From positions 2,964,603-3,028,602 of the forward strand of contig NW_003314262.1 in NCBI RefSeq assembly GCF_000143415.4: a stretch of 64,000 bases of DNA, given 5' to 3'. Under the pieces are notes generated by a model that ran no database searches, had not been told where the DNA came from, and saw only the letters and a program-made list of their open reading frames with translations. The stretch comes from Selaginella moellendorffii (taxonomy: Eukaryota; Plantae; Lycopodiophyta). Shown piece after piece: positions 41,994-64,000 of the stretch. Position numbers and translations under genes: made by a program. Numbering within the stretch: the stretch's first letter is position 1; the number at the start of each line of letters is the position of its first letter.

Positions 41994-42293
41994 ATGGCGA
42001 GCAAGTCCTAGCTGATACTCTTGGTGATGTTTGTGACACTCCTCCTAGTGGGAGTGGACGCCCAGCAGCGATGCAAATCCGGATGGAACTGGGATGGTGA
42101 GAAGTGTATCCAGTGCCCGAAAGACTGGTACTGGTATGGCAACGGTTGCCACCAATGCCTCTCCGGATGGAAGTGGAGTGGAAGCAAATGCGTGAGTTGC
42201 CCAAGCAGCTGGTACTGGTATAGAAATGGCTGCCATCGCTGCCCTCCTGGTTTGAGCTGGAGTGGTGGTGGAAGCCGCTGCATTAGGATGTGA
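41994..42293 (+). pseudogene. Cys/Trp-repeat secreted protein, copy 1 (type A-like); TAG at codon 6
   Basis: MASKS*LILLVMFVTLLLVGVDAQQRCKSGWNWDGEKCIQCPKDWYWY...; TATAAAT at about 41913. The ATG at 42027 could still give a short signal peptide. Confidence 0.85.
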
Positions 42294-42599
42294 TCACACA
42301 ACACTGCTGTAATATGACTTCACCACAGCATTTGCAGGAATAAAGATTTGCTGTAATAGACCAGCAATGCTGGAGTTTGAAGGAAAACTGTGGCATTTGC
42401 AGGAATAAAAGCTCTTGCAGCTTCGATTGTAGCATTCCCATTAGCCGTGTTGAGGAAGCAATCCAGCCTGCAATTAGAGTCTTTGAGAGGTGGCTTTTCT
42501 TGGTTTGATCGGTTTGGAGATGTTATCTAGCCCTCTATTTTGACTCAAAGGTTGCAACCTTTGTAATTTCTTCGTAATTTCTTGTTGCATGGACCATGA

Positions 42600-43100
42600 A
42601 CTGGTGGGCGGCGAGGAGATTTGAACTCAAGAACTTCGTATTGGATGCGGTTTGTGCCTGTCCACCCCAAAAGATGTCATGCATTGTCCATTATGCTTGG
42701 CGGCACGTACTCAATTTCATATGGTGGAGGATTACTCGTCTCAAGCTCGAAGATGCGAGGCTGTTTTCTGGAGACGGCTGTAAAGCTCCGCTAACGCGTT
42801 TAGCATGAATCTTGGAATCTTTCAGATGGAAGATCTTGGCCGTTTCGAAATGCATAGGCAGCACGTTGTGCTTCGCTCCTCCATCGAATCAAACAGGCCC
42901 TTGGCAAGATTGATCTTGCGATCCTGCCAGAAGAACTTCCCTAGTAGGCTGTCAAAGGAGCTCCTCGCCTCTCTAAAGTTCTGGGCGACCGCAGTGATTA
43001 TCGAATTAGTCAATCACTCGGGGCATGGTTTCAAACACTCTCCTTGCTTCCAACGCATAGCCTGTTTGGCATACAATTCTCTCACAGGCGATCACGTCAG
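42600..43100 (-). pseudogene. PPR (PLS-class-like) gene relic
   Basis: Reverse-strand fragments GYALEARRVFETMP, NSIITAVAQNFREARSSFD and LAKGLFDSMEERST, with frameshifts. Confidence 0.55.
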
Positions 43101-43440
43101 ATAAAAAAGACTGATTTTCTTGACGATCAATGTAAATGTTTGTACGCAAATGTAAATGTGACCTTTTATATTCTACGGCCAGGTACCAGAGCAGCCTGTT
43201 ACCCGTCCGTTCTGCATTGAATGCGATTGAGTTAAGAGATCCATCTGATCAATACATTTAAAGCAGTTTAGAAAAAGAAAAGAAGAGAGAGAGAGAAGAA
43301 GCTGGAGAAAGAAATCCAAGATCTCCTTCCTCTGCGCGAGAGAGAGATCAAAGAATAGTTTTTCTTCTCTTTTCTGTTGTCCTCCTCTCCTCCTTGCTCC
43401 TGGCATTGATCGAGATCTCCTCCTCTCACAGCTCACAGCT

Positions 43441-44471
43441 ATGGTGAGGAGGCTTCGCCACACAGAGAAAGGGGGATGGCAATGGTGGGTTTTAGCCGGC
43501 ATTGTAGCATTGGTGGCTGTTCTATCCGTTGTCACAGTGTTCGTTGCGCAGCACAAGCACAGACACAAAGGCGGGAGCTCCTCCTCCTCTTCCTCTTCTT
43601 CCTCGTCCCCAATCTCTGGAGGGAAGATCCCTCCAGCAAATGCCCAGCCTCCAGCCGCCAGCGTCTCGTATCCTCCATCCCAGGACTCCGGAGGCACTGT
43701 CTACGCCAAGTACGCGGAGCCACTCAAGATTTCTCTCCAGTTCTTCGACATCCAGAAATGTGAGTAGATTTTTCTTTCCTCGTCGACGATCGATTCCATT
43801 GCAATTCCCCGAAATCGATCACGTTGGCTGCGAGAACTCCGCATTGGGTCCCTCGTGGTCGCTGTCGGTCCCTTCCCCTCCCCCTGGATTTTGCGTTTCC
43901 TCGTTCGTTCTAATGGTTTGGATCTTCCGCAGCGGGAAAGCTACCCCCAGACAATCCCATAGAATGGCGAGGAGATTCGGCGCTATCCGACGGTAGCGAT
44001 GCACACGTGGATTTAAGCGGCGGAATGTATGACGCTGGGGACTACATCAAGTTTGGCTTTCCAATGGCGTTCACGGCCACCATTCTTTCGTGGAGCATTC
44101 TCGAGTATAGGAAGGAGTACACCGCCACGCAGCAACTCCACTCGGTCACTGGATCGCTCAAATGGATCACCGATTATCTCATCAAGGCCCACGCATCAGA
44201 GAACGAGCTCTACTTCCAGGTACAAGTTTTTTTTCTCCTCCCTTTCCTCTAGCTGCTATGGTTTCCTTGTGTATGTTTCTCTTGTTTTTTCTTTCGCTAA
44301 TACCTAGAACTAGAATGATGGTTCTTTGGATTGCATTCTCTTTTGCTAGAGCTAATCTTTCTCTATGTTAGTCGCGTGAAATTGAGCTAGAGATAGATGG
44401 TATTCTCGGCTACATGTGAGTGTAATTTCTTGTCGATTTGATAGATGGTTCTTCGGATATATGTGTGTGTA

Positions 44472-44506
<35 letters not shown>

Positions 44507-46075
44507 CAGCTTTCTGTGTAACTTAGATATGTTTTCTCCTTTTCGCGTGTAATTTGAGGTGTTTTTTTCTTCCACCGATGTTTTCGAATTCCTGAGAAGA
44601 TTCGATTTTGTCTTTCACGTTTTTATTGTGGATGTTCCTTGGAATGATCTTTTCGTCTGGTACAAGTGTAAGAACTCAGTTTTTCGCTAGTTCTCGTAGT
44701 ATTTTCGTCTTCAAGTCTCTATGATCAAGCTATCCTCTTTCTAACTTTTGTACTTTCGTGAGAGCCAGGTAGGAAGCCCAAGGCTGGATCACGCATGCTG
44801 GGAGAGAGCCGAGAAGATGGACACTGCTCGCCCGTCTTTCAAGCTGGATCCATCACACCCAGGGACCGAGGTGGCGGCCGAGACGTCGGCGGCCATGGCA
44901 GCAGCCTCGCTCGTGTTTCGAAACGATGACCCCTCGTACGCACAAACTCTCCTCTCACACGCAACGCAGCTCTTCGCCTTTGCAGACAAGCATCGTGGAT
45001 CTTACACCGCCAGCTTTCCATCCGATCAGCTGTACTATAACTCTACGGGCTTCGAGGACGAGCTCCTCTGGGCCGCTTCGTGGATGTTTTACGCGACCAA
45101 GGACTCAAAGTACCTCGCCTACGCGACTGGAAAGCTGGCACAGCTAAGCGCCGGATGGGAGAAAGCTCCTGCTTGGTTTAGCTGGGATGACAAGAAACCG
45201 GGCATTCAGGCAAGTTCTCTCAAACTTTCTAGTGTTTTTTTGACTTCCATTTCTTTTCTTGTGTTGTTTTCCTTCGATTCTTCCACACTCTTCTCACACT
45301 TCCATTCTTCTAGGTGCTGCTATCGCGACACTATTTGTTTGAGCCGGAGGAGAGTGATGTAATGGTGAGAAGCTCGCTGGTGAAGTATGGCAAGACTGCC
45401 GAACACCTGGTCTGTGCGTTTCTTCCACAGTCTCCCACTGCTAGCACGAACAGGAGTACCGGTGGATTGCTGTGGGTGAGCCAAAGGAACGCTGTCCAGC
45501 ACGCCGTTGGCTCGGCTTTCCTAGCGGTCGTGTACGCGGACTATCTTTCGAGCTCGGGAGTTAAGCAGTTCCGGTGTTCCGGGAACAGCTTCGCGGCCAA
45601 AGATCTTCGGGCGTTTGCGGCTTCACAGGTACTAAAAACTTTGAGAGTTCTTCAAAGATAGAATTCCAGACTTAAAAGTAGTTACAAAGTTGGAACTAGA
45701 ACTTAGAACTTTTGTGGTCTCAGGCTAAAAGTTCTCTTACAGGCCGATTACATCTTGGGAGAGAACCCCATGTCCAAGAGCTACCTCGTTGGATATGGCG
45801 CAAACTTTCCACAGCAGCTCCATCACAGAGAAGCATCCATACCTCTGGACGCAGCGACTGGGTGCAAAGATGGATTCCGGTGGCTCCACGCTTCTGCTCC
45901 AAATCCACACGTCGCCACCGGAGCTCTGGTCGGAGGGCCCTTTCAAAACGATAGCTACTCCGACTTGCGAGACAACACAATGCAAAACGAGGCCACCACT
46001 TACAATTCGGCCGCCATGTCTGCGCTGCTCGTGGCTTTGTATGCTAATGGTCCGATACTTCCAACAGCACTTTAA
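43441..46075 (+). CDS. Membrane-anchored glycoside hydrolase family 9 endo-1,4-beta-glucanase, 564 aa; exons 43441-43759, 43933-44219, 44769-45209, 45314-45628, 45743-46075
   Basis: N-terminal TM helix; motifs QKSGKLP, WRGDSAL, DLSGGMYDAGD, DELLWAASW, FSWDDK, DYILGENP..SYLVGYG, HHREASIP, QNEATTYN. Exon sum 1695 nt is in frame; intron 3 is GC-AG. Confidence 0.95.
44461..44506. repeat. Compound (TG)n(AG)n microsatellite in GH9 intron 2
   Basis: Direct reading. Confidence 0.9.
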
Positions 46076-46206
46076 AGAGATTTGTCAAAAGGCTTTAGTT
46101 TCAATGGGAATTTTTTTTCTTTTTCTTTGTTAGATGAAATGGCACATCGCAAATTTGAGGAACTTGGGTTAGTGGTTAGTTAAAACTTGAGTGAAAAGAA
46201 TCTTCA

Positions 46207-47548
46207 TCACTCCAAGTAGAGCCAGTCCTGCCCATCGATAAACTTTATATCGCTGTACTCATAAGCTTGATCTGAGGTCAGCTGCTTGATCCAATTAACA
46301 CGCCTGGTGCTGTCCGCGCCGGGACCAAAGTTCCCATGTTCGGCAAAGAACGCAGTCCTGCAAAATCCAGAGAGATTAGGCCCGTCATCTTTTCTCTTTC
46401 TATGTGGTGAGGAAACTGTCCTTACCCCGCGGCTGGGTTGTAAGCCCATTGGTCCCATCCAGTCGGGTTGACGACTTCGTCCAGGTAATTGTTGACAAAT
46501 ACTACAGAAGCATATTCCTTCCACGGACGACCCAGATGCACCAGGCCCGTCCCTCCAATGTAGCTGTTGTAAATCGAATAGCCCGAGTCCAATGTGGCAT
46601 TGAACTTGGACTGAGCAGTGATCGATCCAGATTTGCTCCTCGCGTTTGAAATGATGAGACAGCCTGTGGGAACGATGAAAACCAAGTAAGAAGAAAAGGT
46701 AAAACTTTCTTGTAAGTTTACCTCAAACAATGCCCGGCCTTGTCCAAAGATGAAATCGACATTTCCCTGAATGTAGCTTCTCTTGTAGTAATGCCTTCCT
46801 TTCTGATCGTAGAGGGTATCTTGGCTGGAAGTAATAAAGCAGTCGTAGAATGCCGCGTATTCACCCGAGACGCGAAGGGCCACGGCTTGGCCTCCCACAG
46901 CTCCGGAGTAAGCAAACGGAGCATCGTTCTAAATCATAAAAACAACAATAAGTCAGTATTGCATATGCTGTTAGCTTGGATTCGAGTTTTGTCTTTTTAC
47001 CTTGAAAGTAATGTACTGAGCTACAAAGAAATTAGCCTCAACTGCAAATGTGGAGGTGTTGAACGTTTTGACGGAATTGTTGGTGTTCCCATTGAACACA
47101 ATTACCGTGGAAAACTTGGCGTCAGGGTTACCGACAAGTGTGATGAAGTCTTTTGTTGCAGGGATTATGATCTTTTCACTGCACAGCCCAAACAAAACAA
47201 AAGATTGGCTGGTTTCTCACATTCACCACTAACATACCGATAAACTCCTGCTGCGACGTTGATGATATACCGCTGCTTGTTTTGGAGGGGAACAGCATTG
47301 ATTGCCTCTGTGATCGTCTTGTACTCCTCGTCGGGGCCGACGTAAAGTTTGACTTTATCAGAATTTGCACGGGAAAGGGCTTCGCGGGGTGGAGGTTCAG
47401 TGTCGTCATCGTCACCACCATCATTGTCACGGTCGTCATGGTTGTCATCATCGTCATCATCATCCTCACGGCGGCCTAGGCATCCCCGATAATGAACAGA
47501 CAAAATCAGAAAACCAAAGAGGAGAAAGAGAAGGTAAGGCTTCAACAT
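46207..47548 (-). CDS. Pectin methylesterase (CE8, no PMEI pro-domain); exons 47548-47238, 47178-47001, 46928-46722, ~46663-46426, 46357-46207; apparent 1-nt deletion at the exon 4 start
   Basis: Signal peptide, Asp-rich linker, motifs GVYREK, QAVAL, QDTL, DFIFG, LGRPW. Canonical splicing gives 1085 nt, one base short of frame. Confidence 0.9.
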
Positions 47549-47747
47549 TGTGGCTGCCTGAATATTTGTGTCAGGAAGTTGATAAGTTTTATAGAGGCCT
47601 GGAGCTAATTTATTATTATGTGAGTTTTGATAAATTTAACAATGAACCATATTAGTTAAACAATAAACCATATAAATTTATTAACGAAAATAACCTTTTG
47701 GTGCTGCGAAAGGTTAAACTAAAAGAATGGTTTATTAATTTCGTTAT

Positions 47748-47824
47748 GGGGTGGTGGCGCAGTTGGTCGGTCTCATAGCTTCTAGGTTATCCTGAGGTCG
47801 AGAGTTCGAGCCTCTCTCACCCCA
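47748..47824 (+). tRNA. Elongator tRNA-Met(CAT) with 11-nt intron, lacking about 8 nt of the D-stem 3' strand and anticodon-stem start; probable pseudogene
   Basis: GGGGTGGTGGCGCAGTTGG...GGTCTCATA[gcttctaggtt]ATCCTGAGGTCGAGAGTTCGAGCCTCTCTCACCCCA followed by a T5 terminator; the AGCGCGTA of the plant consensus is absent. Confidence 0.85.
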
Positions 47825-47908
47825 TATTTTTCTAGAGTTTTCACAATGATTTAAAAGTCACAGAACAATTATTTTTGTGATCATGTGAAATATTGGGCTC
47901 CAATCTGG

Positions 47909-48226
47909 TTAGTTCTTGATGCAGTGGCCCTTGCTCCATTTCCAGCCAAACTGGCATTGGTGGCACTTGTTGTTGTACCAGTACCAGTTGCTCGGGCAAC
48001 TCACGCATTTGCTTCCACTCCAGTTCCATCCGGAGAGGCATCGGTGGCAATCGCTGCTATACCAGTACCAGCCTTTGGGACACTGGATGCACTTATGACC
48101 GTCCCAGTTCCATCCAGATTTGCATTGCCGCTGGGCTGCTGCGCTTTCGATTCCACCAACGTCCACTCCAACCAGGAGGATTGTCACAAACATGGCCAGA
48201 AGCATCAGTTGGGACTTGCTCGCCAT
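47909..48226 (-). CDS. Cys/Trp-repeat small secreted protein, copy 2 (type A, intact, 105 aa)
   Basis: Hydrophobic signal peptide followed by five 14-aa C-x3-W-x-W-x4-C-x2 repeats (10 Cys, 10 Trp); TATAAAT about 87 bp upstream. Confidence 0.92.
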   Translation of the reverse strand: MASKSQLMLLAMFVTILLVGVDVGGIESAAAQRQCKSGWNWDGHKCIQCPKGWYWYSSDCHRCLSGWNWSGSKCVSCPSNWYWYNNKCHQCQFGWKWSKGHCIKN

Positions 48227-48312
48227 TGTATCGTCAATCTAGAAATGTAAACTAATTGCTTTTCTTGTATCCCTTATTTGCTTTGCTGTGTTATGGTGCC
48301 AGAGTAGTGCCA

Positions 48313-48420
48313 ATTTATATGGAGGATTTGAGGCTGAGTCTAAGTAACACTTCTATGTACAGGGTTTTTACTGCTTCTCGGGCACGATATGTCGTGTTTG
48401 TGCTTCATTGACGGGGTCAA
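48313..48420 (-). promoter_or_regulatory. Type A promoter: TATA box, palindrome CACGA(T/C)ATGTCGTG and inverted TTGAC-GGG-GTCAA element
   Basis: TATAAAT at 48313-48319, palindrome at 48383-48396, TTGACGGGGTCAA at 48408-48420; conserved at 50139-50176 and about 63391-63422. Confidence 0.55.
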
Positions 48421-48825
48421 TAAACAAGTGTACGACTTTATCCAAATGACACAACCTCGAGTGAAATTATCAAAAATATCCCGGTGAGTATAAAAATGTC
48501 TATCTATCTATCTAATTGCGACCAATCACTATTTTATATGAATATAAATTGAGTTGCTAACTGGCTCATATGCATTCAAAAATATGGTAATGTTTTTAAA
48601 AGTGAACGCACTTATTGAGTGACATGTGCCTCAAGCTTCTAAACATTCAGAAATTTTTTTATGAAATATTAGAAAATGAAACTCAAGCAGCAAGGCAGGA
48701 TGAAATCTCTTCTGATTTTGTTGCCAAGGAAATTGGACTTCGCTACCGTAGAATGGGACGACACATTTTATTTACCAAGACAATTGGCTATTATACAAGT
48801 TTCAGCATGGATCTTGATGGGCAAT

Positions 48826-49058
48826 TCAGTCCTTATAGAACCTTCCGGTCCAGCGCCAGCCCCTTTTCGCATCTGTGGCAACCGATGCCATACCAGTACC
48901 AATAGAGCAGCGGTGGCAAGAACTGGTATTCCAGAACCAGTACTCCGGGCAGGAATTGTTGTACCAGAGACGCAGTGCCACCCCGACTTGCATTCCCACT
49001 TTTAGGCGCTTGCATTTGCATTGCCTCCAATGTCAACTCCCACCAGGAGCACCGCCTC
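48826..49058 (-). pseudogene. Cys/Trp-repeat protein, copy 3 (type B, frameshifted and deleted)
   Basis: AVLLVGVDIGGNANASA*..CKSGWH..WYNNSC..PEYWFWNTSSCHRC..WYWYGIGCHRC fragments in shifting frames. Confidence 0.85.
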
Positions 49059-49282
49059 ACGCTCTTCCTGTTGCTCGCCTTAAAACTCTCCTCTTGCCTC
49101 TGTCTCGACTTGCAAACGATAAGAAACTTTGAGAAACTTGAAGCTTGAAGTGTTGGATGGGAGGATTTACAGTTCTAGGCGGTGACCACGTCTTACAGGA
49201 TTAGCACGTTTAGTTCAGGGCTACTCATTGACAACATCTACGTTAAAAAGTAAAATGTGAAGCTGTGATACAATGCGGCCTT

Positions 49283-49502
49283 GGCTTGGACTGGGTACTG
49301 ATTGATCCAGATTTGGTCCTCGCGTTTGAGACAACACAATCCTGTGGGGAAGGATGGAAACCAAGTGAACTAGAAAATTCACGTAAACGTTTCTTGAAGT
49401 TTACCTAAAACAATGTCTAAAATAGACACTTCTCTGGTAGCTTCTCTTGTACTGAAGCCTTCCTTTGTGTTCGTAGCTGTAAGTAAAAATCAGTCGTAGA
49501 AA
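49283..49502 (-). pseudogene. Pectin methylesterase gene fragment (duplicate of about 46603-46850)
   Basis: Collinear similarity across the exon 3/intron 3/exon 4 junction. Confidence 0.75.
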
Positions 49503-49556
49503 TAATTCACGCAGGATAAGTTAAATAAAGGTTAGAAAGAAAGAAAGCAGGGCAGT

Positions 49557-49582
49557 CTGAGGTCGGGAGTTCGAGCCTCACA
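49557..49582 (+). pseudogene. tRNA-Met 3' half relic
   Basis: ctgaggtcgggagttcgagcctc matches 47792-47814, in the same position relative to the type A gene. Confidence 0.65.
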
Positions 49583-49662
49583 TCTTTCATATACTTTCAT
49601 AACGAAATGGACATGGGACAATTATATTGTGACGATCCATTAAATATTGGATTCCAACTTGG

Positions 49663-49980
49663 TCAGTTCTTGATGCAATGGTCCTTGTTCCATTTCCAGC
49701 CAAATTGGCATTGGTGGCACTTGTTGTTATACCAGTACCAGTTGCTCGGGCAACTCTCGCATTTGCTTCCACTCCACTTCCAACCGTAGAGACATTGGTG
49801 GCAATCGTTGCTATACCAGTACCAGCCTTTGGGACACTGGATGCACTTGTGGCCGTCCCAGTTCCATCCAGATTTGCATTTCTACTGGGCTGCTGCGCTT
49901 GCGATTCCACCAACGTCCACTCCAACCAGGAGAATTGTCACAAACATGGCCAGAAGCATCAGCTAGGACTTGCTCGCCAT
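49663..49980 (-). pseudogene. Cys/Trp-repeat protein, copy 4 (type A; TAG at codons 6 and 33)
   Basis: Same 318-nt length as copy 2; the repeat domain is open, but two stops precede it. Confidence 0.9.
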
Positions 49981-50675
49981 TGTATCCTCAATAGAAATGC
50001 AAACTGATATCTCTTCTTTCTCTTGATTAAATGCTTTGCTGGGTTATGGTGTTGCCAATGTGGGACCAATTTATATGGAGGATTTGAGGCTGAGTCCAAG
50101 TAAGACAGCTATGCACACGGTTTTTACCGCGTCTCCGGCACGACATGTCGTGTTTGTGCTTGATTGACGGGGTCAATCCAAATGAAACAGTCTCTATTTA
50201 AGTCCCGTGAAATCATCAAAAGATAATGGATCTTTGTTTTACCTGAGTTGCTAACTGATACATATGCATTAAAAAATATGATAACATTTGTACGAACCAT
50301 AATTTCTTGTTGGGTATTTAAAGTCCACTCAGAAGCAAGAACTAAGAAAAAGTAAACTAAACTAAACTGGCTAAACTAAGAAGCATGCGACTTTAATTCA
50401 CATTTCTCTCTCATCTCTTAGTATGAAACGCAGCAGCGCAAGACTTCGGTATTTCGATAATCTTGCTGCTCGAGTTGCTAGAAACTAAAAGTGAAACTGG
50501 CAGCAAGTTTCTCGTCAAGCGGATTCTGGATGAGGAAACCGAGCCTTAGAATGGGATGTCATGGAAAGAAAAACACACACATTTTATTCACCAAAAGGTT
50601 ATCACAAGAAACAGCACAACCACAATATTTATTGTCGTTGACATATTACATGAGCTTGGATCTTGATGGGCAACT

Positions 50676-50981
50676 TCAGTTCTTCTTGCAGGAACTTCCG
50701 GTCCAGCGCCAGCCCATCTTGCAGCGGTGGCAAGAACCCGAGTACCAGTTCCAGTACTCCGGACATCGGTGGCAAGAATTGTTGTACCAGTACCACGGGC
50801 ATTGGTGGCAAGAATTGTTGTACCAGTACCAGCGGGGCGGGCAAGAGACGCACTTCTTCCCATCCCAGTGCCGCCCCGGCTTGCATCGCCCATGGGCGCT
50901 CGCACTTGCAATTCCTCCAATGTCAACTCCCACCAGGAGCACCACCACAAGCATCGCCAGCAGCATCTTGTTGCTCGCCAT
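50676..50981 (-). CDS. Cys/Trp-repeat small secreted protein, copy 5 (type B, intact, 101 aa)
   Basis: Signal peptide MASNKMLLAMLVVVLLVGVDIGGIASASA plus five repeats (the third is 12 aa); TATAAAT at about 51101-51107. Confidence 0.92.
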   Translation of the reverse strand: MASNKMLLAMLVVVLLVGVDIGGIASASAHGRCKPGRHWDGKKCVSCPPRWYWYNNSCHQCPWYWYNNSCHRCPEYWNWYSGSCHRCKMGWRWTGSSCKKN

Positions 50982-53193
50982 CTTTTTTAAGAACGCCTCT
51001 TGCTTTGATGTGATCCCAGACTTGTGAACGAGATTGGAGAAAGCTAGAGAAACTTGGAGGAGCTTGAGTACTTTGATGTGCTTGAGTATGGAGTGGGAGG
51101 ATTTATAGTGCAGGAGAGCGTGTTATAGTTCCGGATGACTCGCTGACTTTTTCGACGTTGAAAAGTAAAATGTCAAGCCCTGCGGATACGGATGTAGTCC
51201 TTCGACCGTGTCAGGCGCAAAGTCAGACGTTTTGGGTATTTGTGCTTTCATGGTAGTAAAAAACATTAATGTTTTACAACGTCTGGAGTAAAATGGGTTT
51301 GCCAAAACATAATTCTTGCAGATGCTATGCTTGAGAATCATTTAGATTCATTTCTAATGAGGAATGTTATTGAATGAATTTCTTCCGCTTTTAATGACCT
51401 CAGCTCCCAGACTGCATTTTTACCTGGATTTGCCTGTGCACGTAGACAAGGAACTCCACATAAGGCGAGCCCAGCCCGCTCTTAAGGAGTGGAACATCAT
51501 CTCTGTAACAAAACCGAATGAGCAAGAGTGCCTCGAAAAAGAAAAAATGAGTGTGTTTGATCACCTAAAGGATCTCCCCGCTTCAGCAAATGCAACCTAG
51601 AATAGCAAGCATTTGCTATTCTAGGTTGCATTTGCTGAAGCGGGGAGATCCTTTAGGTGATTTAGCATCCGCATTAGAAAGACTAGTGAGAGTTTTTTTT
51701 TATCGAAACATACCGCAGGTAAGAGCAGCGTTGACGACGGATCTCGTTCACCATCTTGTTCAGCAAAATTGATGGCTCGTTATCGTACTCTTGCAACAAA
51801 AACTGCAAAAGAGAACAAGAGTAAGAAAATTACGAGTCATACGAGCAAGGGAATGTAGTACCTGTCCGGGAATCACTTCATTCACAGACCGCACTTCAAA
51901 GAGTTGATGAAGCAGCTCAGAGGAAACAGCCTTCCCTGCGTATAGAAAAGCGTCCTCACCGGTCTCCAAAAGAAAGATTCCTTCTGGGTCCAGGTTCTCA
52001 CTTGATAGAGGAAGTGTCAGTGGTAGACTTGACTTGTCCAGCTATGCAAAACGCACTTTAATCAGAGTACCAAAGAGATAACTAGTACCTTTGGTATGTT
52101 GTGGATGGAAAATAGTCTAGGATATACCAATGGTATTGCCAGGGATGCTGAGATACTTGTAGCTTGCATAAGCCAGTAAGCCCTTTCATCAACATGAGCA
52201 TCTTGCCACAGACCCATGCTCTTTGTAAGAGCTGTAATGAAGGAAATGAGATTGTGAAAAGTTAAAAGAAAAACAACATGAAACTTACTGAGTGTATACA
52301 GCAGTAGCAACTTGGGGAGGTAGGCATGCCTTGAACAGTGGAAGCCAAATGAGTGTAATATGTTTGGACTAAAGGCTTTAATTTAGATAGTCAAAAGTGG
52401 GAGTGGAATTCCTAACAAAGTGCTTGAGGAACGAGCATGAAATAAGCAGTAAGTGAGTATCTAGAAAAGGGACACAAGAGGACTAACACATGACACATGA
52501 AACTGTTTGAGATGGAGTTCGAGTCCGAGTCTAATTCTAAGTGCGAGTGCGAGTGCGAGTGTGAGTCTGAGTTTGGGTCCAAGTCTGAGTCCGAGAAGGA
52601 GTCTGAATCCGAATCCAAATATGAGTCTGAGTTCAAATCCAAAGGTGAAAGCCTAAAGCGTTTGTATCCCAGACTTTGGGGGGTTTGATGAGTTCCAAAA
52701 GTATAATAAGGGGAAGACTTTAATAGAGCTAATTTAGCTAAGAAATACTAGTATGACCAAGGAAGGTTATTATCACGTAGTGGGTGATAATAAAATTGTT
52801 GAGGAGTCCAAGGCTAGAGTGAATATGAATAGACAAGTGGGGTAGCTTGGTGAAATATTCAAAAATTGGCTCTAGCTCCCTTGAGAGATCAAATGGTCAA
52901 TACTCCCAATCCAAGTGTGGGTGGCACTACCTACTTGGATACTAGCATGGCTCATCAGAACCTCGCTTTAGCCACATAGTTAGGGCATTTAAAGACAGAA
53001 GGTGGGGAGAGTACCCACGAGGCTTGCATAAAGCTATAGTGTTTCAAAATGTCATCCCAAAGTCCCAAACTGTGAAAAGGAAGAGGAATAATCCTCTGAT
53101 GTAGTGATCAAGGATACAATCATATGGTGAGGAAGTTTCAAAGGACAATACGACTTAGTAATCGAGCCTTTAAACCTTGACCCAATGGTAGTG

Positions 53194-56100
53194 TATAAAC
53201 CACAAATTTTTCCTTTCCAATTTGCCAGCTTACCTCGTCTATCCGACCAACACTACCTTGGCTTGTGCTAAGTTCCCTCGCCAAGGTTCTTGCTTATTGC
53301 ACCAGCTCCTACTTGGTCCTACTTGGTTTCAACTAATCACTGCACGAGCAACGAAGAATTAGCCTTCCATCCACAGATTCCCAAATCCCTCCCAATCCCC
53401 CTTCTCGGGTTAGACTGGACTTAAGGTTCGGCTACACTCCCCGCAGGCACAAGCAGCCAGGCACACCAAGCCTCCAGGTTCCTAACACCCCTTGGTACAA
53501 CAAGACTTGATCATGGGACCCTCTAAATCCCAAGCCTTGAGTGTAACACTTGCTTCGGGACATCAGGGCGAAACACCGTGGCCTAACGGCCCGGTATAGG
53601 TACCTCTACCCCCCCCCCCCCCCCCCCACTTCCATCCCGAAGGGAAGGCCCAAGCCCCTAGGAAGGGCGAGGACCAATGAGCCACAAGGTTCTCAAGTGG
53701 GGCACCACTTCACATGAGCCGGGAGCACCACAGTCGGTTTCCCTTTCGAGAGTGGGAGCTGCTCTTGAGCACTTCCCTGGGTGGCCCCTCCGGCACCACC
53801 CAAGCCCATACTCACTCCCACCCAAGCCCATACTCACTCCCACCCAAGGGCCTTCGGCCCCAGTTTCAACCTCAAATCAGTTTGGAAGCACCATTGGAGA
53901 GTTCCTTCAAGACTGGTTCCTGGACCTCACTATCCCTACTATACTTTTGGAACCCCCGACAGCCCCCCCCCCGCCCCCCCCCCGGGAGACGCATGCTTTG
54001 GGCTTTCACCCCTTGACATGTATTAGTATTTGGACTTAGTCTCAGATTCGATCTCGGACTCGATCTCGGACCCAACTTCGGACTCGGTCTCGGACTTGAT
54101 CTCGGGCTCGATCTCGGACTCGACCTCGGACTCGGTCTCGGACCCGATTTGGATCTCGGACTTTGTCTCGAGCTCGGTCTTGAACTTGGTCTCGAACTCG
54201 GTCTCCAATTCAGCCTCAGACTCGATCCCGGACTCTATCTCGAACTTGGTCTTAGAGTTGGTCTTGGACTCGATCTTCGACTTGGTCCCATCCGATGAAC
54301 TCTTTGTCATTTCGGTCATGCTTTTGGGGATCCTTTAGCCTACGGCATCTCGGGGAGTCGGTTCCTTACAACTCCACCACCCATAGAAGAAGTTCGATGC
54401 CCACATCGAACATCTCTTTTTATCCTACGACTTGTTGACCATGTCTCCGGGGGCATCCCCCCACTTAGCGGTGTGCCTAAGTTAACCTCCCCGGCCAAGA
54501 GCCCACGACAACGGAATATAGGTGTCTCTATACCCCTCATCACCACGCCCTAGTATGGGGTCGGGACTTGAACCCAACCTTGCTTTATTAGAGGGTTGGG
54601 ACTCGAACCCAACCTCCGTAGAATACGTCTACGGATTCGACATCCCCGCGGGGAGTCGGGCGTAGTGCCCTACGCCTAATCGACCTAGCTAACCCATGCT
54701 AATTAGCTTACCTTCGGTGCGCCTTCGGGTCCCAATATATGCCATTGCTCAACTTCACAAATTGATATTTTAATTGAACTTTGCATAAGTACATAGAGTT
54801 TTGCCTTGCAGAAATTCCTCCACTAGATCTCGCACATTCGCTAGGTTCTCCTCCAGTTCCCATGTTGCTTCGTAGTGTGGAAATCCTTTCCACTTCACAT
54901 GGAACTCTCTCACCTCGCGTCCTTGTCGCTTGCTCTTGCGTGCATTGAGGATGGCCTCAACTTCGTATTCCTCTTCCCCTTGGATAACCTCAGGTAAAGG
55001 TCTTGCTTGGTCCTTGCGAAGCGGATCCTCAAAGTACGGCTTAAGTAAGTTCACGTGGAACACTGGGTGCATCTTCCCCATCTCTCGAGGAAGTCGGAGG
55101 CGGTAAGCCACTTTACTGATTCGTGCCTCAATCTTGTAAGGCCCCACGAACCTACTTAAGGAACTTAAGATCAATTCATTTACAGGAATACATGCGTTTT
55201 TACCTTTGGGTCAACTTCCGGCTGATCCCACTTGGTAGCCTGAGGTTCTTGGTATTCAGCCACACCTTCTCCCCAGCTTGGAACTCTACATCCCGACGCT
55301 TCTGGTTCGCATACTTGGTTTGCCTTTGTTGAGCTCGTTCCAAGGAATCCCTCACTAGATTCCAGATGTTGAGTCTTTCCACCGTGAATGCCTCCATTGC
55401 GGGTAACTCTCCATGATACTCGGCCATGCCGAGTTCCACAGGACCTTCAATAGCTCACCCATTGATGACTTCCCATGGACTCACCCCGATACTTGAATGT
55501 GGTGAGTTGTTATAACACATTTCTGCAAATCCCAAATGACTTACCTAATCGGTCTGGTCTCTAGAGACATAGCATCGCAAATAATCCTCCAGCTGCCTAT
55601 TCACCCTTTCTGTTTGTCCATCTATCAAGAAGTATTAGTGTCATCCAACTTGACTTAATACCCCATACCTGTCTGTGGGTGGTAGGCTGTGCTGAATTCA
55701 ACTTCGTGCGATACTGTTCTAGGAGAGTTCTCCAAAACCTACTAGTGAAGATCTTATCTCGATCTGAGATAATCTCTTCTGGCCTTCCCCACACTTGAAC
55801 CACTTGTTCGAAGAACAGCTTTGCCACACCTTCCGCATCCACTTCCGTTGTGGTGGGTATGAAATGTGCCATCTTCAAAAATCGGTCCACCACCACGAAT
55901 ATCGCATCAAACCCCTCACTTGGGGGGAGTCCCGTGATGTAGTCCATCGTAAGACATTTCCACGGACGATCTGGAATTGGGATGCTTTGCAACAAGCCCC
56001 CATTAGCCTTAGTCACGGCTTTTACCTGCTGACATATTGGACATGTCTTTACATAGTCTTGGACGTCCTTAGCCATATTTGGCTAGTGATACTTCCTCTT

Positions 56101-59100
56101 GAGTAAGCCCATCGTTTTGGGCACTCCGCCGTGTCCCGCAAGAGGTCCATCATGACACTCTTCTAAGGCTACCTTCCTTAGTTCCCCTTCTAGAACATAC
56201 ACCCTCGTTTGCTTGTAATAGATGAGTCTGTTGTGTTTCGCATAGCCCGTTTTCTCTTCCGTTGGCAGCTCAACTCTCTAGTGAGCTTCCCGTGCCTCTA
56301 GATTCCTTAGCAACACTTCTTGTGCTAGACCATCGTTCTCATATGCTGTCTGCACATCGTCCCAAAAGGTTGCTGTCGCACTAGATATCGCTAACTTCAA
56401 GCTCGTTTTTCGACTTAGCGCATCTGCCACGATATTGCTCTTCCTAGGCTTGTACAGGATTTCGCAATCAAACTCGGCCAAGGCATGGGCCCACCGACCC
56501 TGTTTCCCTCTCAGGTCGGGCTGTGACAAGAAGTGTTTCGTTGCCACATTGTCCGTTTAAACCTTGAAGTGTCTCCCAAGGTAGTGTCGCCACTCCTTGA
56601 GCGCCTTGACCACCGCAAACAGTTCCTTCTCGTGAGCAGGCCACTTCCTTTGAGCCTTGTCCAACTTCTTCGAGAAGAACACTACTGGATAGTTGTCTTG
56701 CTTCAAAACTGCACCCAACGCAAAGTCTGAAGCATCTATTTCTACCTCAAAGTCCTTACCAAAGTCTAATAATGCCAACACGGGAGCCTTCCTCAACTTC
56801 CCTTTGAGGTGGATGAATGCCACCTCATATTCCGCTGTCCATACCATCTTCTCTTTTCCTGTTTGGTCCGTTAAGGGTAGGGCTACTCTCGAATAGTGTC
56901 TGATAAACTTTCGGTAGTAGTTGCATAGCCCCAAAAATGCCCTCAACTCATGTACATTCGATGGTCACTCTCATTCCTGGATCTCTTGGACCTTCTTTGG
57001 GTCCACCTTGAGCCTGTCCTTGCCCACCACATGCTCGAGAAACTTTACCTCTTGTTGGCAAAGTCACATTTGCTCTCTTTAGCATATAGTTTGTGTTCCC
57101 TTAGTTTTTCAAACACCTTCGCCAAGTGTTCGGCATGCTCCTCTAGCGTCTCGCTATAGATCAGGATGTCGTCGATATAGACGACCATGAAGTGAGCTAG
57201 ATAGGGTACAAAGATGTGGTTCATCAGCGCCGAAAATGTTGCCGGCGCATTACATAGCCCGAAGGGCATCACCAGAAACTCAAAGCTCCCATACCTCGTT
57301 CGACAGGTTGTCTTCTCGACATCTTCCTCGGCTACGCTGATCTAGTAGTATCCTAACCTTAGGTCAATCCTCGAGAAGTATTTTGCCTTTCCCAACCAAT
57401 CGAACAGGTCCTCAATCCTTGGCAAAGGGTATTTGTTCTTCTTTGTATACTTGTTGAGCAACCGGTAGTCTATGCACATGCGCATAGATCCATCTTTCTT
57501 TTTCACAAATAACACTGGCGCCCCATATAGCGACTTGCTCAACCTAACATACCCTTTGTCCACCAACTCCTCTAGTTGGCACTTGAGCTCCTTGAGTTCT
57601 TTTTCGTTCAAACGATAGGGGGGACGAACCACCGCCTCAGCACCCTCGACTAGCTCAATCTTATGTTCTATCGGTCGTGCGGGGGGCAACCCCGCCAGTA
57701 GCTCCTCCTGCATGGTATCCTGGAATTGGTCCAACACCCGCTGGATCACTAAAGGTACTTCTTCCATTTCTGTCTTTTTGTCACTCTTCACCGAGAGTAA
57801 ACACAAAAATGCTGCCTTAGTTCCTTTAGTGAGTTGTCCTCTCGTGGACACTCCCAAGGAAGAAGATTTAGGGTGGAGGCCCAGGATCTAAAGGTAGGGC
57901 AAAAAAAGGCCAAAGATTCCTACTTAAACCTGCATTTGCCAGTACCACAAGGTTTCTACCTAGTTCATGCAAGGCTATCACGAACCGATTAAACCAATCC
58001 ATTCCGAAGATCACGTCAAATCCCGCCATATCCAACACGGTGAAATCCATGTCCACCTTCCAAGTCCCCACTTCGACTCTCGCTTGTCGAAGTACCTCAT
58101 CGGTGCTTTGGCTACCTTGAACAAGCTCTATAGTCCTTGGTTCGCCTAGCCGCTGCACCGCTAGTCCGACTTGCCAGACTATGTCTACAACCACAAAATT
58201 ATCCGAAGCACCCGTGTCAATTAAGATCTTAACAAAGCTACCTCCGAGCTTCCCTCGGAGGGCTAGTAGATGTCGCGAACGACTCTCTACCAAAGTTGCT
58301 CGTGTAATGAGTAACTTTGAGTTAGGGACTGGATCACATACCTCAGTTTAGACTTCACCCAGTTTGATGGCCATATTGGCTCTAGCCTTCTTCAGGTAGG
58401 GACATTCCCTCGAAAAGTGTCCCTCTTCACTGCAGTTGTAGCATATGTTGTTTCTCACGCTACTATACAACTTGACCTTCTTATCTATAGGTTTGTCTCT
58501 TTTCACTTGACACCCCCACGTACTCACTTGCTGGCCACCGGATTTGCCTTTCCGGAACCCCGAGGACTCATTCTTAGAGAAACTCTTCTTGAATTTCCCT
58601 CGGCTATACGTTCCCCTTGGTTTGGCCCCTTTGCTAAACGTGGACCCTAACCCCATCGTGTTTCCCTTTCACAGGTTATCATTGAAATGCACCTTGATGG
58701 CCGCATCCAACGCTTCCTTATAATTGGTCGGGTTCCACCGCATCACCTCACCGCGAGCCCAAGTTTGCAAACCTGATATGAAGGCATGGAACGCATCCAT
58801 ATCCCCCATATCCGTGACAAGTATCCTCTTTGCCATAAACCCATTCACATACTCCTGAATGGTTCTAGTCTGCTTCAGCCTACTCAGCTCATCTCTTAGA
58901 TGCAAAGTAGCATTCGGAGGAATGTAAGTCGTGCGGATCCTCGCCTTCATCATTTCCCAAGTGGCCACCGGTCCTTCGTTGGCCTCTGTTGTTCTCCACC
59001 AAGACTTGGCATTATCTACCAAGTATGGTTTTGCATATGGGACCTTCTCCGAGCTTGGTAACCGCAACGCTCGGAAGTAGTCCTCCATATCATAAAATAT

Positions 59101-60758
59101 ATCCTCCACCACCTTATAGTCATTCACTCCCTTGAAAACTGGTGGGGGCTTTGGTTTGTCCTTGGGAACTGCCTGAGGGACTGATTCCACTTCGGTCTAT
59201 TCGACCTTGTTTGGTTCTGCCTCAGTCCCTACCGAAGGGTCCGCACCCTCTGCGCTGCCAGCATTCGTAGTCTTTCGCTTTTTCTTCCGCTTCTCATCAC
59301 GCTTTAACTTGCATACGAGAGTCTCTAGCAGGGCATTGGTTTGTGCCAATTGTCCTTTTAGAACGTCCAATCAAGCCTTGGATGACCGAACCTCACCACT
59401 GGACTCCTGTTTGGAAGTTGTCTCACTTGAGTCCTCCTCATGCAAGGATTCCTCATCCATAACCTCTTGTTTGACTGGAGGCTCCAGCTCTGCAGGAGGT
59501 TTTGTCTCCGCCTTGGTTCGTTTCCACCCTGCCTTTGCCATCTCCCAGCAATCCGCCTCTATCCTTCGCTAGAACTAAGGAAAAGGCTCCGATACCAAAT
59601 TGTAAGCCACAAATTTTTCCTTTCCAATTTGCAAGCTTATCTCGTCTATCCGACCAACACTGCCTTGGCTTGTGCTAAGTTCCCTCGCCAAGGTTCTTGC
59701 CTATTGCACCAGCTCCTACTTGGTCCTACTTGGTTTTAGCTACTCACTGCACGAGCAACGAAGAGTTAGCCTTCCATCCACAGATTCTCAAATCCCTCCC
59801 AATCCCCCTCCCCGTGTTAGACTGGACTTAAGGTTTGGCTACACTCCCCGCAGGCACAAGCAGCCAGGCACACCAAGCCTCCAGGTTCCTAACACCCTTT
59901 GGTACAACAAGACTTGATCATGGGACCCTCTAAATCCCAAGCCTTGGGTGCAACACTTGCTTCGGGACATCGGGGTGAAATACCGTGGCCTAACGGCCCG
60001 GTATGGGTATCTCTACCCCCCCACTTCCATCCCGAAGGGAAGGCCCAAGCCCTTAGGAAGGGCGAGGACCAATGAGCCACAAAGTACTCAAGTGGGGCAC
60101 CACTCCACATGAGCCGGGAGCACCACAGTCGGTTTCCCTTTCAGGAGTGGGAGCTGCTCTTGAGCACTTCCCTGGGTGGCCCCTCCGGCACCACCCAAGC
60201 CCATGCTCACTCCCACCCAAGGCCCCTCGGCCCCAGTCTCAACCTCAAGTCAGTTTGGAAGCACCACTGGAGAGTTCCTTCAAGACTGGTTCCTAGACCT
60301 CACTATCCCTACTATACTATCCCTGCAGCCCCCCCCCCCCCCCCCTTGGGAGATGCACGCTTTGGGCTTTCACCCCTTGACCTGTATTAGTATTTGGACT
60401 TAGTCTCAGATTCGATCTTGAACTCGATTTCGGACCCGACTTCGGACTCAGTCTCGGACTCGATCTTGGGCTCGATCTCGGACCCGATCTTGGACTCGAC
60501 TTCAGACTCGACCTCGGATTCAGTCTCGGACCCGATTTGGATCTCAGACTCTGTCTCGAGCTCGGTCTCGAACTCGGTCTCGAACTCAGTCTCCGATTCG
60601 ACCTCGGACTCGATCCCGGACTCTATCTCGAACTTGGTCTTAGAGTCGGTCTTGGACTCGATCTTCGACTTGGTCCCATCCGATGAACTCTTTGTCATTT
60701 CGGTCATGCTTTTGGGGATCCTTTAGCCTACGGCATCTCGGGGAGTCGGTTCCTTACA
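53194..60758 (-). mobile_element. Full-length but decayed Ty3/gypsy chromovirus; LTRs 59601-60758 (5') and 53194-54370 (3')
   Basis: TSD TAGTG; tRNA-Met PBS at 59585-59597; PPT at 54371-54382. Confidence 0.95.
54770..59550 (-). pseudogene. gag-pol (gag with CCHC, protease, RT, RNase H, integrase, chromodomain) with multiple stops and frameshifts
   Basis: [78 protein letters not shown]. Confidence 0.93.
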
Positions 60759-61259
60759 TAGTGTTGGCAAGCACAGCTGTGAATGGAGAAAGACTTAGTG
60801 GGGATTGAAGAAGGGATATTGGGGAAGGGTGTTCCTTATGTTTCCAAGCATTTTAAGGGTGCTAAAGTGTGGTCAAGGGATGACCACTCATGGGCAGATA
60901 GTCCATTTTTTGAGAGATGAGACTGTGATGTAGGTGGTCTTAGACTATTGATGGGACAAGGGTGAATGAATATGGCCTTAGCGTAATGGGCTAATATATT
61001 AGTGGTACCTTTGGGTGTTGGTCATGGGATTGGACATGTGAAGCACTTGGACCAAGTGCAAAGGCTAAGTGGCATAAATGCCATTTATAGCACTAGTATG
61101 TCCCAAGTCAAAAATAGGACTTATGGAAGTTGTGAGCGAGACTTCTTCAAGTGGTCAAATGTGTGGTTAAGTGACTAAAGTAAAATAGAAATTTTAGTTT
61201 TTTACAATGGTAATTCCATCACTCATTTAAGTCAATGTGTTTCCCATAAAGTATGATTT

Positions 61260-61870: not shown

Positions 61871-62816
61871 AATACATGTTCGACCATTTGAGATATTAGT
61901 TTAGCTTCTGTTTAGTGTTGACTAAATCCATATTTGGTGTCAACTAAATCGATATCTTGCAGTTCTACAATCTGAGCAGGAGTTGATAATCCCCCAGTCT
62001 GTGCTACCACGATTCATAGAAATATTAGCTTGGACAATATTCAATACCTCTCTTGATGGAAGCATGTTATATACATGCTTCCAATTGGGATCATAAGCCT
62101 CATGTACTTGTATAGCATTGGTCTCGAAATTCCAAGGTAAGTTGCAAGGTAATTAGTAGTTTTAGTCTAGAGAATTCAAGTAACAAAATTAATTAGACTT
62201 CCAAAGCCTCGCAACTATACAAATTTAGTACACAATTAGTATGACAATAGATAATTTAACTTACCTCAAAAACATCTCTATCCTCAATGGTCTCACTCTC
62301 AACACTTGATTTATCAGAAACATTAATGCCATGATATACAACACTATGTTCTTCATCCTCCATTAGACTTGCTTCTCCAATTAGATAAGGAAAAGCCTAC
62401 ATAAATCAGGTGGTTCCACACACACCATTAGGAAATACTTTAGGCCAAAACAGTTTCAACATTGCAACCGAAAAAATAAATGATCTACAAACAGGAAATA
62501 GACTTCACCTCCTACCAGAAAAACTGCCAGTTGAATCCTGTCTTGGGTAGCAACATTAGAGACCAGGACAAGCTACCAACCCTAAGTTAACAAGTCAAAG
62601 TTATGCCAATGAATGAATGGTCCATGCATACGTGTGTATGAGTGATAATGGAAACATGCCATGGCCATCCGATGGGCATATTATGGCCATAAAATTATAG
62701 ACGAATTGGAAGACAACATGTCAGTTTTTGCATATGATCATCCACACACAATTTATAAATTGAACACCATAACTTCCTCTTTTTTTAACCGATGCTACAT
62801 TAGCCCTTTGATTCTA

Positions 62817-62850
62817 CCTGAGGTAGATAGTTCAAGCCTCTCTCACCCCA
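62817..62850 (+). pseudogene. tRNA-Met 3' half relic
   Basis: cctgaggtagatagttcaagcctctctcacccca matches 47791-47824. Confidence 0.75.
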
Positions 62851-62925
62851 TGTTTATCCCAATAAGTTTGCAATTTTATTTAAATCAGATTTAAAATCAC
62901 AATTCATTTTGTGCCTCCAATTTGG

Positions 62926-63245
62926 TTAGTTCTTGATGCAGTGGTCCTTTGCTCCATTTCCAGCCAAACTGGCATTGGTGGCACTTGTTGTTGTACCAGT
63001 ACCAGTTTCTCAGGCAACTCACGCATTTGCTTCCACTCCACTTCCATCTGGAGAGGCATCGGTGGCAATCGCTGCTATACCAGTACCAGTCTTTGGGACA
63101 CTGGATGCACTTATGGCCGTCCCAGTTCCATCCAGATTTTGCATTGCCAGTGGGCTGTTGCGTTGGTGGTCCCACTGACGTCCACTCCAACCAGGAGGAT
63201 TGTCACAAACATGGCCAGAAGCATCAGCTGGGACTTGCTCGCCAT
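62926..63245 (-). pseudogene. Cys/Trp-repeat protein, copy 6 (type A; two +1 frameshifts)
   Basis: 320 nt versus 318 nt for copy 2; extra A after the first Cys codon and another in the last repeat. Confidence 0.9.
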
Positions 63246-63832
63246 TGTATTGTCAATTTAGCAATATAAACTAATTTCTTTTCTTGTATCCCTTCTTTGC
63301 TTTGCTGTATTATGGTGCCAATTTATATGGAGGATTTGAGGCTGAGTCTAAGTAACAATGCTATGTACACGGTTTTTACTGCTTCTCGGGCATGATATGT
63401 CGTGTTTGATTGACGGGGTCAAGAAACAAGTGTACGACTTTATCCAGATGAAACAACCTCGAGTTTCGTTGTGAAATTATCAAAAATATCCCGGTGACTA
63501 TAAAAATGTTTATCTATCTATCTATCTCGTTGCGATCAATCACTATTTTATATGAATTGCCTCATATGCATTAAAAAATATGATAATGTTTTCAAAAGTG
63601 AACGCACTTATTGATATGGTGGAGAAAAGGCCTCCAAGCTTCTAAACATTCCGAAAAAACTTTATGAAATATTAGAAAATGAAACTCAAGCAGCAAGGCA
63701 GGATGAAATCTCTTCCGATCCTGCCAAGGAAATGGGACTTCCGCTACCATAGAATGGACGACACAGTTTATTTACCAAAAGGTTATTACAATTGGCTATT
63801 ATACAAGTTTCAGCATGGAAATGATGGGCAAT

Positions 63833-64000
63833 TCAGTTCTTACAGAACCTTCCAGTCCAGTGCCAGCCCCTTTTCGCATCGGTGGCAACCGATGTCATAC
63901 CAGTGCCAACAGAGCAGTGGTGGCAAGAACTGGTATACCAGAACCAGTACTCCGGGCATCGGTGGCAGGAATTGTTGTACCAGAGACGCACTTCTTCCTA
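63833..64000 (-). pseudogene. Cys/Trp-repeat protein, copy 7 (type B, frameshifted; 5' part beyond the window)
   Basis: KKCVS / WYNNSCHRCPEYWFWYTSSCHHC / WHWYDIGCHRCEKG fragments; collinear with copy 3. Confidence 0.85.

Follow-up and report, generated by a model that had tools for sequence, protein, structure and literature searches.

A family of small, probably secreted, tryptophan-rich proteins in Selaginella moellendorffii similar in sequence to DUF5874-type hairpin repeats

A 64,000-nucleotide stretch of the Selaginella moellendorffii genome (contig NW_003314262.1, positions 2,964,603 to 3,028,602 of the forward strand; hereafter the window) contains a cluster of short reading frames whose translations repeat a unit of about 14 residues, rich in cysteine and tryptophan, behind a hydrophobic N-terminus. 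Are these frames genes, and if so, what kind of protein do they encode, is its repeat new, and what might it do? An initial annotation, made from the letters alone, had described the cluster as seven intronless paralogs in two subtypes, A and B, that encode small, basic, secreted proteins with a repeat that it took to be novel. The subtypes, the gene structure and the general nature of the protein stood up to closer analysis; the repeat proved to have precedents.

Searching the whole window by tblastn with the two intact proteins, together with frame-by-frame translation, recovered the seven family copies (four of type A, three of type B), all within 41994-64000; the same two approaches found no family copy in window 1-41000. 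When all six frames of the window were scanned with a regular expression for the unit C-x2,3-W-x-W-x4-C, 22 matches lay inside the seven copies and one elsewhere, a concentration that is therefore not due to chance. Two copies, c2 and c5, both on the minus strand, are open in this haplotype. The copies are:

41994-42293, plus strand: c1, type A, with a TAG at codon 6 and a degenerate fifth repeat (Trp replaced, two extra residues)
47909-48226, minus strand: c2, type A, intact, 105 amino acids, with a leader of ~31 residues and five 14-residue repeats; transcribed
~48826-49060, minus strand: c3, type B pseudogene with several frame breaks, the same ones as in c7
49666-49980, minus strand: c4, type A, with in-frame stops at codons 6 and 33, otherwise 89.5% identical in protein sequence to c2
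50676-50981, minus strand: c5, type B, intact, 101 amino acids, with repeats of 14, 14, 12, 14 and 14 residues
62929-63245, minus strand: c6, type A pseudogene with two frameshifts, one following the leader and one close to the 3' end
63833-64000+, minus strand: c7, type B, cut by the end of the window, with frame breaks in common with c3

The N-terminal 26-34 residues of the encoded proteins form an export-type leader. A short polar start, MASK(S), is followed by a 13-residue hydrophobic core (2.8-3.3 on the Kyte-Doolittle scale) and by a small-x-small motif just before the first Cys (AAA/Q, ASA/H or VDA/Q), and beyond the leader the proteins contain no second hydrophobic segment. Judged by sequence, this order of n-, h- and c-regions with small residues at -3 and -1 follows the classical pattern of the signal peptide that had been proposed; the leader would be cleaved off, and the protein is probably secreted. 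The mature domains of c2 and c5 (~8.9 kDa) have a computed isoelectric point of 9.0-9.3, a net charge of +7 to +10 and 17-21% aromatic residues; with 10 Cys and 9-10 Trp they are the basic, Trp-rich, ten-cysteine domains that had been anticipated. In type A, five exact 14-residue units alternate between two forms, C-x-x-G-W-[NK]-W-[SD]-G-x-K-C-[IV]-x in odd positions and C-P-x-x-W-Y-W-Y-x-x-x-C-H-[QR] in even positions. The repeat had been called strict, which holds for type A but not for type B, where the first unit carries Arg in place of the first Trp and the third unit is 12 residues long because of a 36-nt internal tandem duplication, located in c5 at 50751-50836.

Are the copies expressed? 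Four RNA runs were aligned to 46200-51400, with depths given as word depths from Logan contigs. Transcripts are present on c2 and c5, whose absence, by the initial annotation's own reckoning, would have counted against function. For both genes, RNA coverage begins just 3' of a TATA box and stops shortly past the stop codon, and both start codons lie in a context with A at -3 and G at +4. The promoter and 3'-end elements are:

48313-48319, minus strand: TATAAAT box of c2, 93 nt upstream of the ATG, read from the sequence
51101-51107, minus strand: TATAAAT box of c5, 126 nt upstream of the ATG
50628-50633 and 50583-50588, minus strand: two AATAAA signals 3' of the c5 stop codon; RNA contigs extend to 50647

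On c2, RNA depth begins in the bin ending at 48287; at the 5' edge of c5 it drops from ~20,000 to 7 between the bins flanking 51071. Word depth on c5 depends on the run; in runs X1 and X2 it ranges from thousands to 20,000, with the peak of ~20,000 in X1. Depth on c2 is tens to hundreds. The pectinesterase gene beside c2 has an RNA depth of zero in the runs where the family is expressed, and contamination of the RNA runs with DNA was rejected on these grounds. Almost every first mate of the stranded run X16 maps to the plus strand, which fits minus-strand RNA in the usual type of stranded library.

The RNA is colinear with the DNA except for one 78-nt skip within the type B repeats that lacks GT/AG borders, as expected of intronless genes. 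The skip (50725-50804 in c5) occurs in one high-depth X1 contig and removes 26 codons, that is, two repeats; with GG..TT ends and 11 ambiguous bases, it was rejected as an intron. Other RNA contigs carry short replacement strings at 50721-50755. The skip reflects either expressed type B variants that differ in repeat number or assembly jumps between the 36-nt repeats. Many RNA reads on the array are just 95-99% identical to the window, which indicates that other alleles or paralogues are expressed too. Likewise, in RNA aligned to c4 the second stop of the window copy (codon 33) is replaced by a sense codon, and this RNA thus stems from an intact allele or paralogue. The type A reads of X16 run at their 3' side into a loose end that was found nowhere in the window, so that the allele expressed there differs in its 3' untranslated region.

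The proteins are under purifying selection. The ratio of nonsynonymous to synonymous substitution rates (dN/dS; Nei-Gojobori) for the mature part is 0.14-0.26 in every computable pair, including A versus B. The two types have retained all 10 Cys despite a synonymous divergence (dS) above 1.7, and all ten are invariant among the three intact proteins. Among 15 variants in c2-aligned RNA, 10 are synonymous, and no Cys or Trp is altered by any of them. It is thus very probable that the copies are real, expressed and constrained genes, each intact one a single exon with its own TATA box.

Public annotation has largely missed these genes. Close relatives of the family in the databases amount to two S. 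moellendorffii entries, both mis-built models. SELMODRAFT_403507 (P0001) keeps the leader and the first repeat, then runs into unrelated sequence through spurious introns. XP_024531936.1, named 'putative pectinesterase 11' (P0002), is a chimera that takes its first 52-53 residues from a type A gene and the rest from the neighbouring pectinesterase. In this model (window counterpart 46207-48226, minus strand), the type A part replaces the pectinesterase's own signal peptide; no RNA joint linking the type A gene to the pectinesterase was seen in the four runs. The SELMODRAFT_403507 locus on GL377566.1 (L001:10001-12028) holds an intact, single-exon type A gene at L001:10001-10297, the twin of c1. 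The mature coding parts of c1 and its twin are 100% identical in DNA (0 differences), amid flanks that are ~87% identical counting gaps (~3.5% substitutions and many indels), a pattern that suggests gene conversion or strong constraint. The intact twin also shows that the family resides at more than one locus or haplotype. A word-indexed protein search with c2 and with a three-sequence profile returned SELMODRAFT_403507 as its sole match, and neither this search nor phmmer, both at the protein level, revealed a homologue of the family in other plants or outside Selaginella. A literature search found no published description. The family is lineage-specific and effectively unannotated in public annotation.

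What does the repeat look like in three dimensions? AlphaFold2, run on c2 with a 12-row alignment, predicted one beta-hairpin per repeat with a predicted local distance difference test (pLDDT) score of 91-94 over residues 40-105; within a hairpin, the first strand consists of the W-x-W segment, and the second contains the closing Cys. For c5, the same five hairpins were predicted without an alignment (pLDDT 71-84). The two models agree on the row of hairpins, one per repeat, that had been suggested from the sequence, and the mature protein is predicted to be a short rod of five hairpins.

Although the family itself appears confined to Selaginella, its repeat is not isolated. In Pfam, c2 and c5 gave nothing above cut-off, with weak hints of DUF4215, TNFR_ELAPOR1_6th, DUF5874 and Ephrin_rec_like. 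DUF5874 (PF19202) reached 13.7 bits with c2 (E 0.084), compared with a gathering cut-off of 27.1, and did not match c5. In phmmer searches, c2 matched 84 proteins at E<=1e-3, including eight at E<=1e-10. With the exception of the two Selaginella models, the matches are long, repeat-containing proteins from bacteria, protists and metagenomes. Their unit reads C-x2-G-x2-W-[DN]-G-x2-C, followed by CxxC or CxC, several of them match DUF5874 or VSP, and a bacterial relative contains C-P-Q-G-H-Y-W-Y-N-N-Q-C, resembling the even Selaginella units. Alignment scores against the relatives lie 5-9 standard deviations above those of shuffles with fixed Cys positions. An hhalign comparison of the family profile with an alignment of eight proteins, all eight of which match DUF5874, gave 99% (E 3e-18, 69 columns), values that internal repeats inflate and that apply to a comparison set chosen from the c2 matches. 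These sequence comparisons make shared ancestry with DUF5874-type repeats likely, although the Selaginella proteins fall below the Pfam threshold and are thus non-members. The repeat can therefore no longer be regarded as unprecedented: its Cys spacing, together with G4, W7, [DN]8 and G9, is that of a widespread DUF5874-type CxxC hairpin repeat, and an early remark on a loose similarity to furin-like/CXXC repeats had pointed in the right direction. We conclude that the family is a lineage-specific plant variant, very small and Trp-doubled, of a known but uncharacterised class of hairpin repeats.

Three phmmer matches (P0012, P0023 and P0028) are proteins of ~135 residues with a hydrophobic leader and Cys-free P-x-G-W-T-W-D-x-x-G repeats of similar period. 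Going by their Ala/Thr-rich leaders, they are apparently bacterial, and they may be a case in which the G-W-x-W-D-G hairpin motif functions in the absence of disulfides.

What could such a protein do? An intact gene encodes a hydrophobic leader and a basic domain of ~9 kDa, composed of five CxxC-linked units of 12-14 residues each. We propose that each unit would fold into a beta-hairpin with W-x-W or W-Y-W-Y on its first strand. A disulfide joining the two cysteines of the unit would most likely close this hairpin, comparable to a hairpin of long-form C-type lectin domains (CTLDs; see below), and the five hairpins would together form a short rod belonging to the furin-like/TNFR-like/DUF5874 class. 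The protein would be exported to the apoplast, and its polycationic, Trp/Tyr-rich surface would bind microbial or plant cell-wall polysaccharides or membranes. Because of its charge, aromatic content, abundance and birth-and-death dynamics, we tentatively favour a defence-type, cysteine-rich, surface-binding protein of the apoplast, a function that we infer and to which we would assign somewhat less than an even chance.

Several points weigh against this interpretation or the steps leading to it. With dN/dS values well below 1, the family lacks the signature of diversification that defence peptides often display. Instead of providing a ligand-binding face, the tryptophans could have a structural role, whether by packing on disulfides or in cation-pi ladders, and both their surface exposure and the disulfide pairing are putative. 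The likeness to DUF5874 may represent convergence of a short motif, multiplied by five repeats and seen in a comparison set picked from c2 matches. Finally, Logan-contig depth is a poor measure of expression, and other alleles or paralogues add to the RNA coverage of the copies.

Among the alternatives, the one that survives best, though we consider it unlikely, is an endogenous cell-wall protein, in which the polycationic rod binds the plant's own wall (de-esterified anionic pectin, cellulose) in a structural or wall-modulating role. The genes were amplified in one cassette with a pectinesterase gene and adjoin a GH9 endoglucanase gene, the paralogous locus also has a pectinesterase gene upstream, and a strongly basic charge and very high RNA abundance would suit such a role. 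Fungal DUF5874-type fold matches are named 'cell wall cysteine-rich protein' and 'oocyst wall protein', but these AlphaFold DB names are automatic. The linkage to wall enzymes may likewise be due to chance; with the pectinesterase at zero RNA depth, there is no co-expression in the runs where the family is expressed, and wall binding is hypothetical.

Less probable again is a new carbohydrate- or polyanion-binding module, a rigid, polycationic, disulfide-stapled rod whose periodic ladder of ~ten Trp and Tyr side chains would dock on wall polymers (chitin, cellulose, de-esterified pectin). On this view, the module would occur in lycophytes only and would have been amplified along with the pectinesterase gene; it might go back to an acquisition of microbial DUF5874-type repeats or to an ancestor common to both.

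We consider it improbable that the proteins are secreted signalling ligands recognised by a receptor kinase, in a role like that of EPF, LURE or RALF peptides. They are small, probably secreted, disulfide-rich and under purifying selection, and two conserved subtypes are kept side by side. However, RNA depths in the thousands are unusual for ligands, Pfam gave no match to plant peptide-ligand families, the protein-level searches found no homologue outside Selaginella, and the rapid turnover of copies fits defence better.

Two further possibilities are very improbable. The five near-identical short units in one open reading frame could be a polyprotein precursor cut into five disulfide-cyclised hairpin peptides of ~14 residues, comparable to the Ib-AMP precursors of Impatiens, and the repeat-number variants (the 36-nt duplication and the one RNA contig lacking 78 nt) would be in line with this arrangement. 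Yet the proteins have neither spacer propeptides nor dibasic or acidic cleavage sites, the units are joined by two residues inside CxxC, AlphaFold2 models one continuous, confident rod, and the 78-nt skip could stem from an assembly that jumped from one repeat to another. We give just as little credence to the idea that the copies are functionless, transcribed, young orphan reading frames in decay. Five of the seven window copies are indeed broken, and the protein-level searches found no homologues in other plants, but the low dN/dS, the retention of all ten Cys across highly diverged subtypes, the mostly synonymous RNA variants, the very high expression and the proper promoters all argue otherwise. 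Metal binding is the least probable of all: consecutive CxxC pairs (C-x2-C-x10-C-x2-C, often C-H-x-C) do have the spacing of a classical Cys4 zinc ribbon and could hold zinc in place of disulfides, and one structural match in the ESM Atlas is a 'double zinc ribbon / ELAPOR1-like' cluster, but a zinc-ribbon protein was rejected as unlikely given the clear N-terminal export signal, which leads to an oxidising compartment, the two terminal cysteines that would be left unpaired, and best structural and sequence relatives that are extracellular disulfide-rich repeats.

How did the array arise? The block 47898-48974, containing c2 and c3, matches 62915-63990, containing c6 and c7, at 86.8%, and c2 matches c4 at 87.8%. 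Since c3 and c7 share their frame breaks, the type B copy had lost its reading frame before the A-B pair underwent duplication. Between c3 and c4 there is a fragment of the pectinesterase gene (46590-46850 matches 49271-49501), and the spacer/tRNA-like part recurs downstream of c4 and c6 (47792-47896 matches 49557-49650 and 62817-62913). One relic of this kind was carried along in the cassette duplication:

49271-49650, minus strand: pectinesterase relic, spacer and 3' part of the tRNA-like sequence

The family expanded by tandem duplication of a cassette of pectinesterase, tRNA-like spacer, type A and type B, and its copies are now being lost. The initial annotation had called this rapid birth-and-death, with two of seven copies intact. 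The turnover is borne out by c3 and c7, whereas the proportion of two in seven is valid for this haplotype only, as the intact twin of c1 on GL377566.1 and the sense codon in c4-aligned RNA show.

Other elements share the region. The tRNA-like gene (47747-47825, plus strand) lies between c2 and the pectinesterase gene; ARAGORN assigns it an odd anticodon, and by eye its sequence resembles an elongator tRNA-Met (CAT) interrupted by a short intron, as plant genes of this type usually are. Rfam at the gathering threshold gave no matches over 41000-64000, the tRNA-like gene included. A multi-exon gene for a GH9 endo-beta-1,4-glucanase (43441-46100, plus strand) is located between c1 and the pectinesterase/c2 cassette. 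Within the array sits a Ty3/gypsy long terminal repeat (LTR) retrotransposon (53196-60758, minus strand) with gag, reverse-transcriptase-like and integrase reading frames; its LTRs (53196-54370 and 59603-60758) are 89.6% identical, a divergence similar to that among the gene copies. A 93-nt 'tRNA-Arg' called by ARAGORN at 54587-54679 falls inside this element and is probably a false call. Upstream of c5 there is a further transcribed unit (51234-51400 and beyond), represented by RNA contigs of 776 and 2581 nt at moderate depth. All contigs at 51234-51400 leave colinearity at 51395 with the same loose end (50 reads of X16); the break is either a splice site or a structural difference between strains.

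With these genes, the model lycophyte gains a highly expressed, unannotated family of probably secreted proteins, and two public gene models, the 'pectinesterase 11' chimera and a hypothetical protein, are exposed as wrong. The family also presents the uncharacterised DUF5874-type hairpin repeat in its smallest natural form, five repeats in ~70 residues, a size that is handy for structure determination, disulfide mapping and binding assays and that makes these proteins an attractive minimal model of such repeats. If it is true that the Trp ladder binds wall polymers or microbes, the proteins would represent a scaffold new to plant defence or wall binding. For now, they constitute one more lineage-specific cysteine-rich family and are not categorically new.

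How, then, do the proteins compare with known systems? They share much with the cysteine-rich peptides of plants (defensins, thionins, hevein/CBM18, snakin/GASA, lipid-transfer proteins, RALF, EPF): these, too, are small, basic and disulfide-rich, carry a secretory-type leader, lie in tandem arrays with birth and death, and are under-annotated. The plant peptides, however, form a single knotted domain, whereas the Selaginella protein is built from repeats, and its framework of C-x10-C-x2 repeated five times differs from all those families. In line with the misfit noted at the outset, no plant cysteine-rich peptide model (defensin, thionin, hevein, snakin/GASA, lipid-transfer protein, RALF, cyclotide) appeared in Pfam at E<=10.

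For a single unit, a precedent comes from long-form CTLDs. The best sequence matches in the PDB, with single sequence and profile alike, were to the N-terminal hairpin of long-form CTLDs (E 0.003-0.02). In CLEC12A, LOX-1, convulxin and NKG2, this hairpin shows the C-P-x-x-W-x-W-x4-C pattern of the even units (C-P-R-R-W-I-W-H-K-D-S-C in CLEC12A). In long-form CTLDs, exactly these two cysteines are linked by a disulfide that shuts the hairpin, a precedent that by analogy would support a disulfide within each repeat. The likeness is limited to this one hairpin; the rest of the lectin domain is absent from the Selaginella proteins. Assignment as C-type lectins was rejected, as the full CTLD fold of ~120 residues with its WIGL motif and core disulfides is lacking and Pfam gave no Lectin_C.

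At the level of the whole rod, the predicted Selaginella fold is reminiscent of furin-like, TNFR-like and Ephrin_rec_like proteins, which are elongated rows of small, disulfide-stapled beta-hairpins with CxxC junctions. Structural searches produced no convincing match: Foldseek against the PDB and AFDB clusters gave E-values of 0.18 or worse, VIA-align gave Z-scores of 3.0 or less, and the best template modelling score was 0.45, to a 114-residue Ephrin_rec_like protein, superposition scores that bending of the rods between repeats lowers. The top ranks, though weak, were all cysteine-rich rods (R-spondin Fu1-Fu2, HVEM, 4-1BB, EGFR/IR, Eph receptors such as EphA2, Elapor1, mGlu and DUF5874 clusters). 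The ESM Atlas gave no usable relative in a feature search (best 0.72) and no convincing match in a shape search. By sequence, TNFR_ELAPOR1_6th reached E 0.03-0.07 (13-15 bits, cut-off 33.2) and Ephrin_rec_like E 0.55 (10.5 bits, cut-off 23.1), both below membership, and the Furin-like and GF_recep_IV models were absent from the Pfam results for c2 and c5. The Selaginella repeats keep to a much more regular period than these rods do, and they contain far more Trp.

Giardia VSP and ciliate-type CXXC surface proteins (PF03302) also consist of CxxC-linked hairpin repeats with a G-x-Y/W motif, and the second-best phmmer match (P0003) is a VSP-family protein; the VSP model PF03302 was not listed for c2 or c5 in Pfam. 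VSP-type proteins are large and membrane-anchored, unlike those of Selaginella. The most extensive likeness is to DUF5874-type repeats, which occur in bacterial, protist, fungal and metagenomic proteins and whose function is uncharacterised. They share with the Selaginella repeats a period of 13-14 residues, the Cys spacing C-x10-C followed by CxxC or CxC, the residues G4, W7, D/N8 and G9 of the odd units and a Pro after the second Cys, with phmmer E-values of 1e-10 to 1e-21. In the protein-level searches, the Selaginella proteins were the only plant examples of this repeat. DUF5874 proteins are long and multidomain, whereas the Selaginella proteins are tiny, stand alone behind an export leader, and add a second Trp to the motif (W-x-W) as well as W-Y-W-Y in every other repeat.

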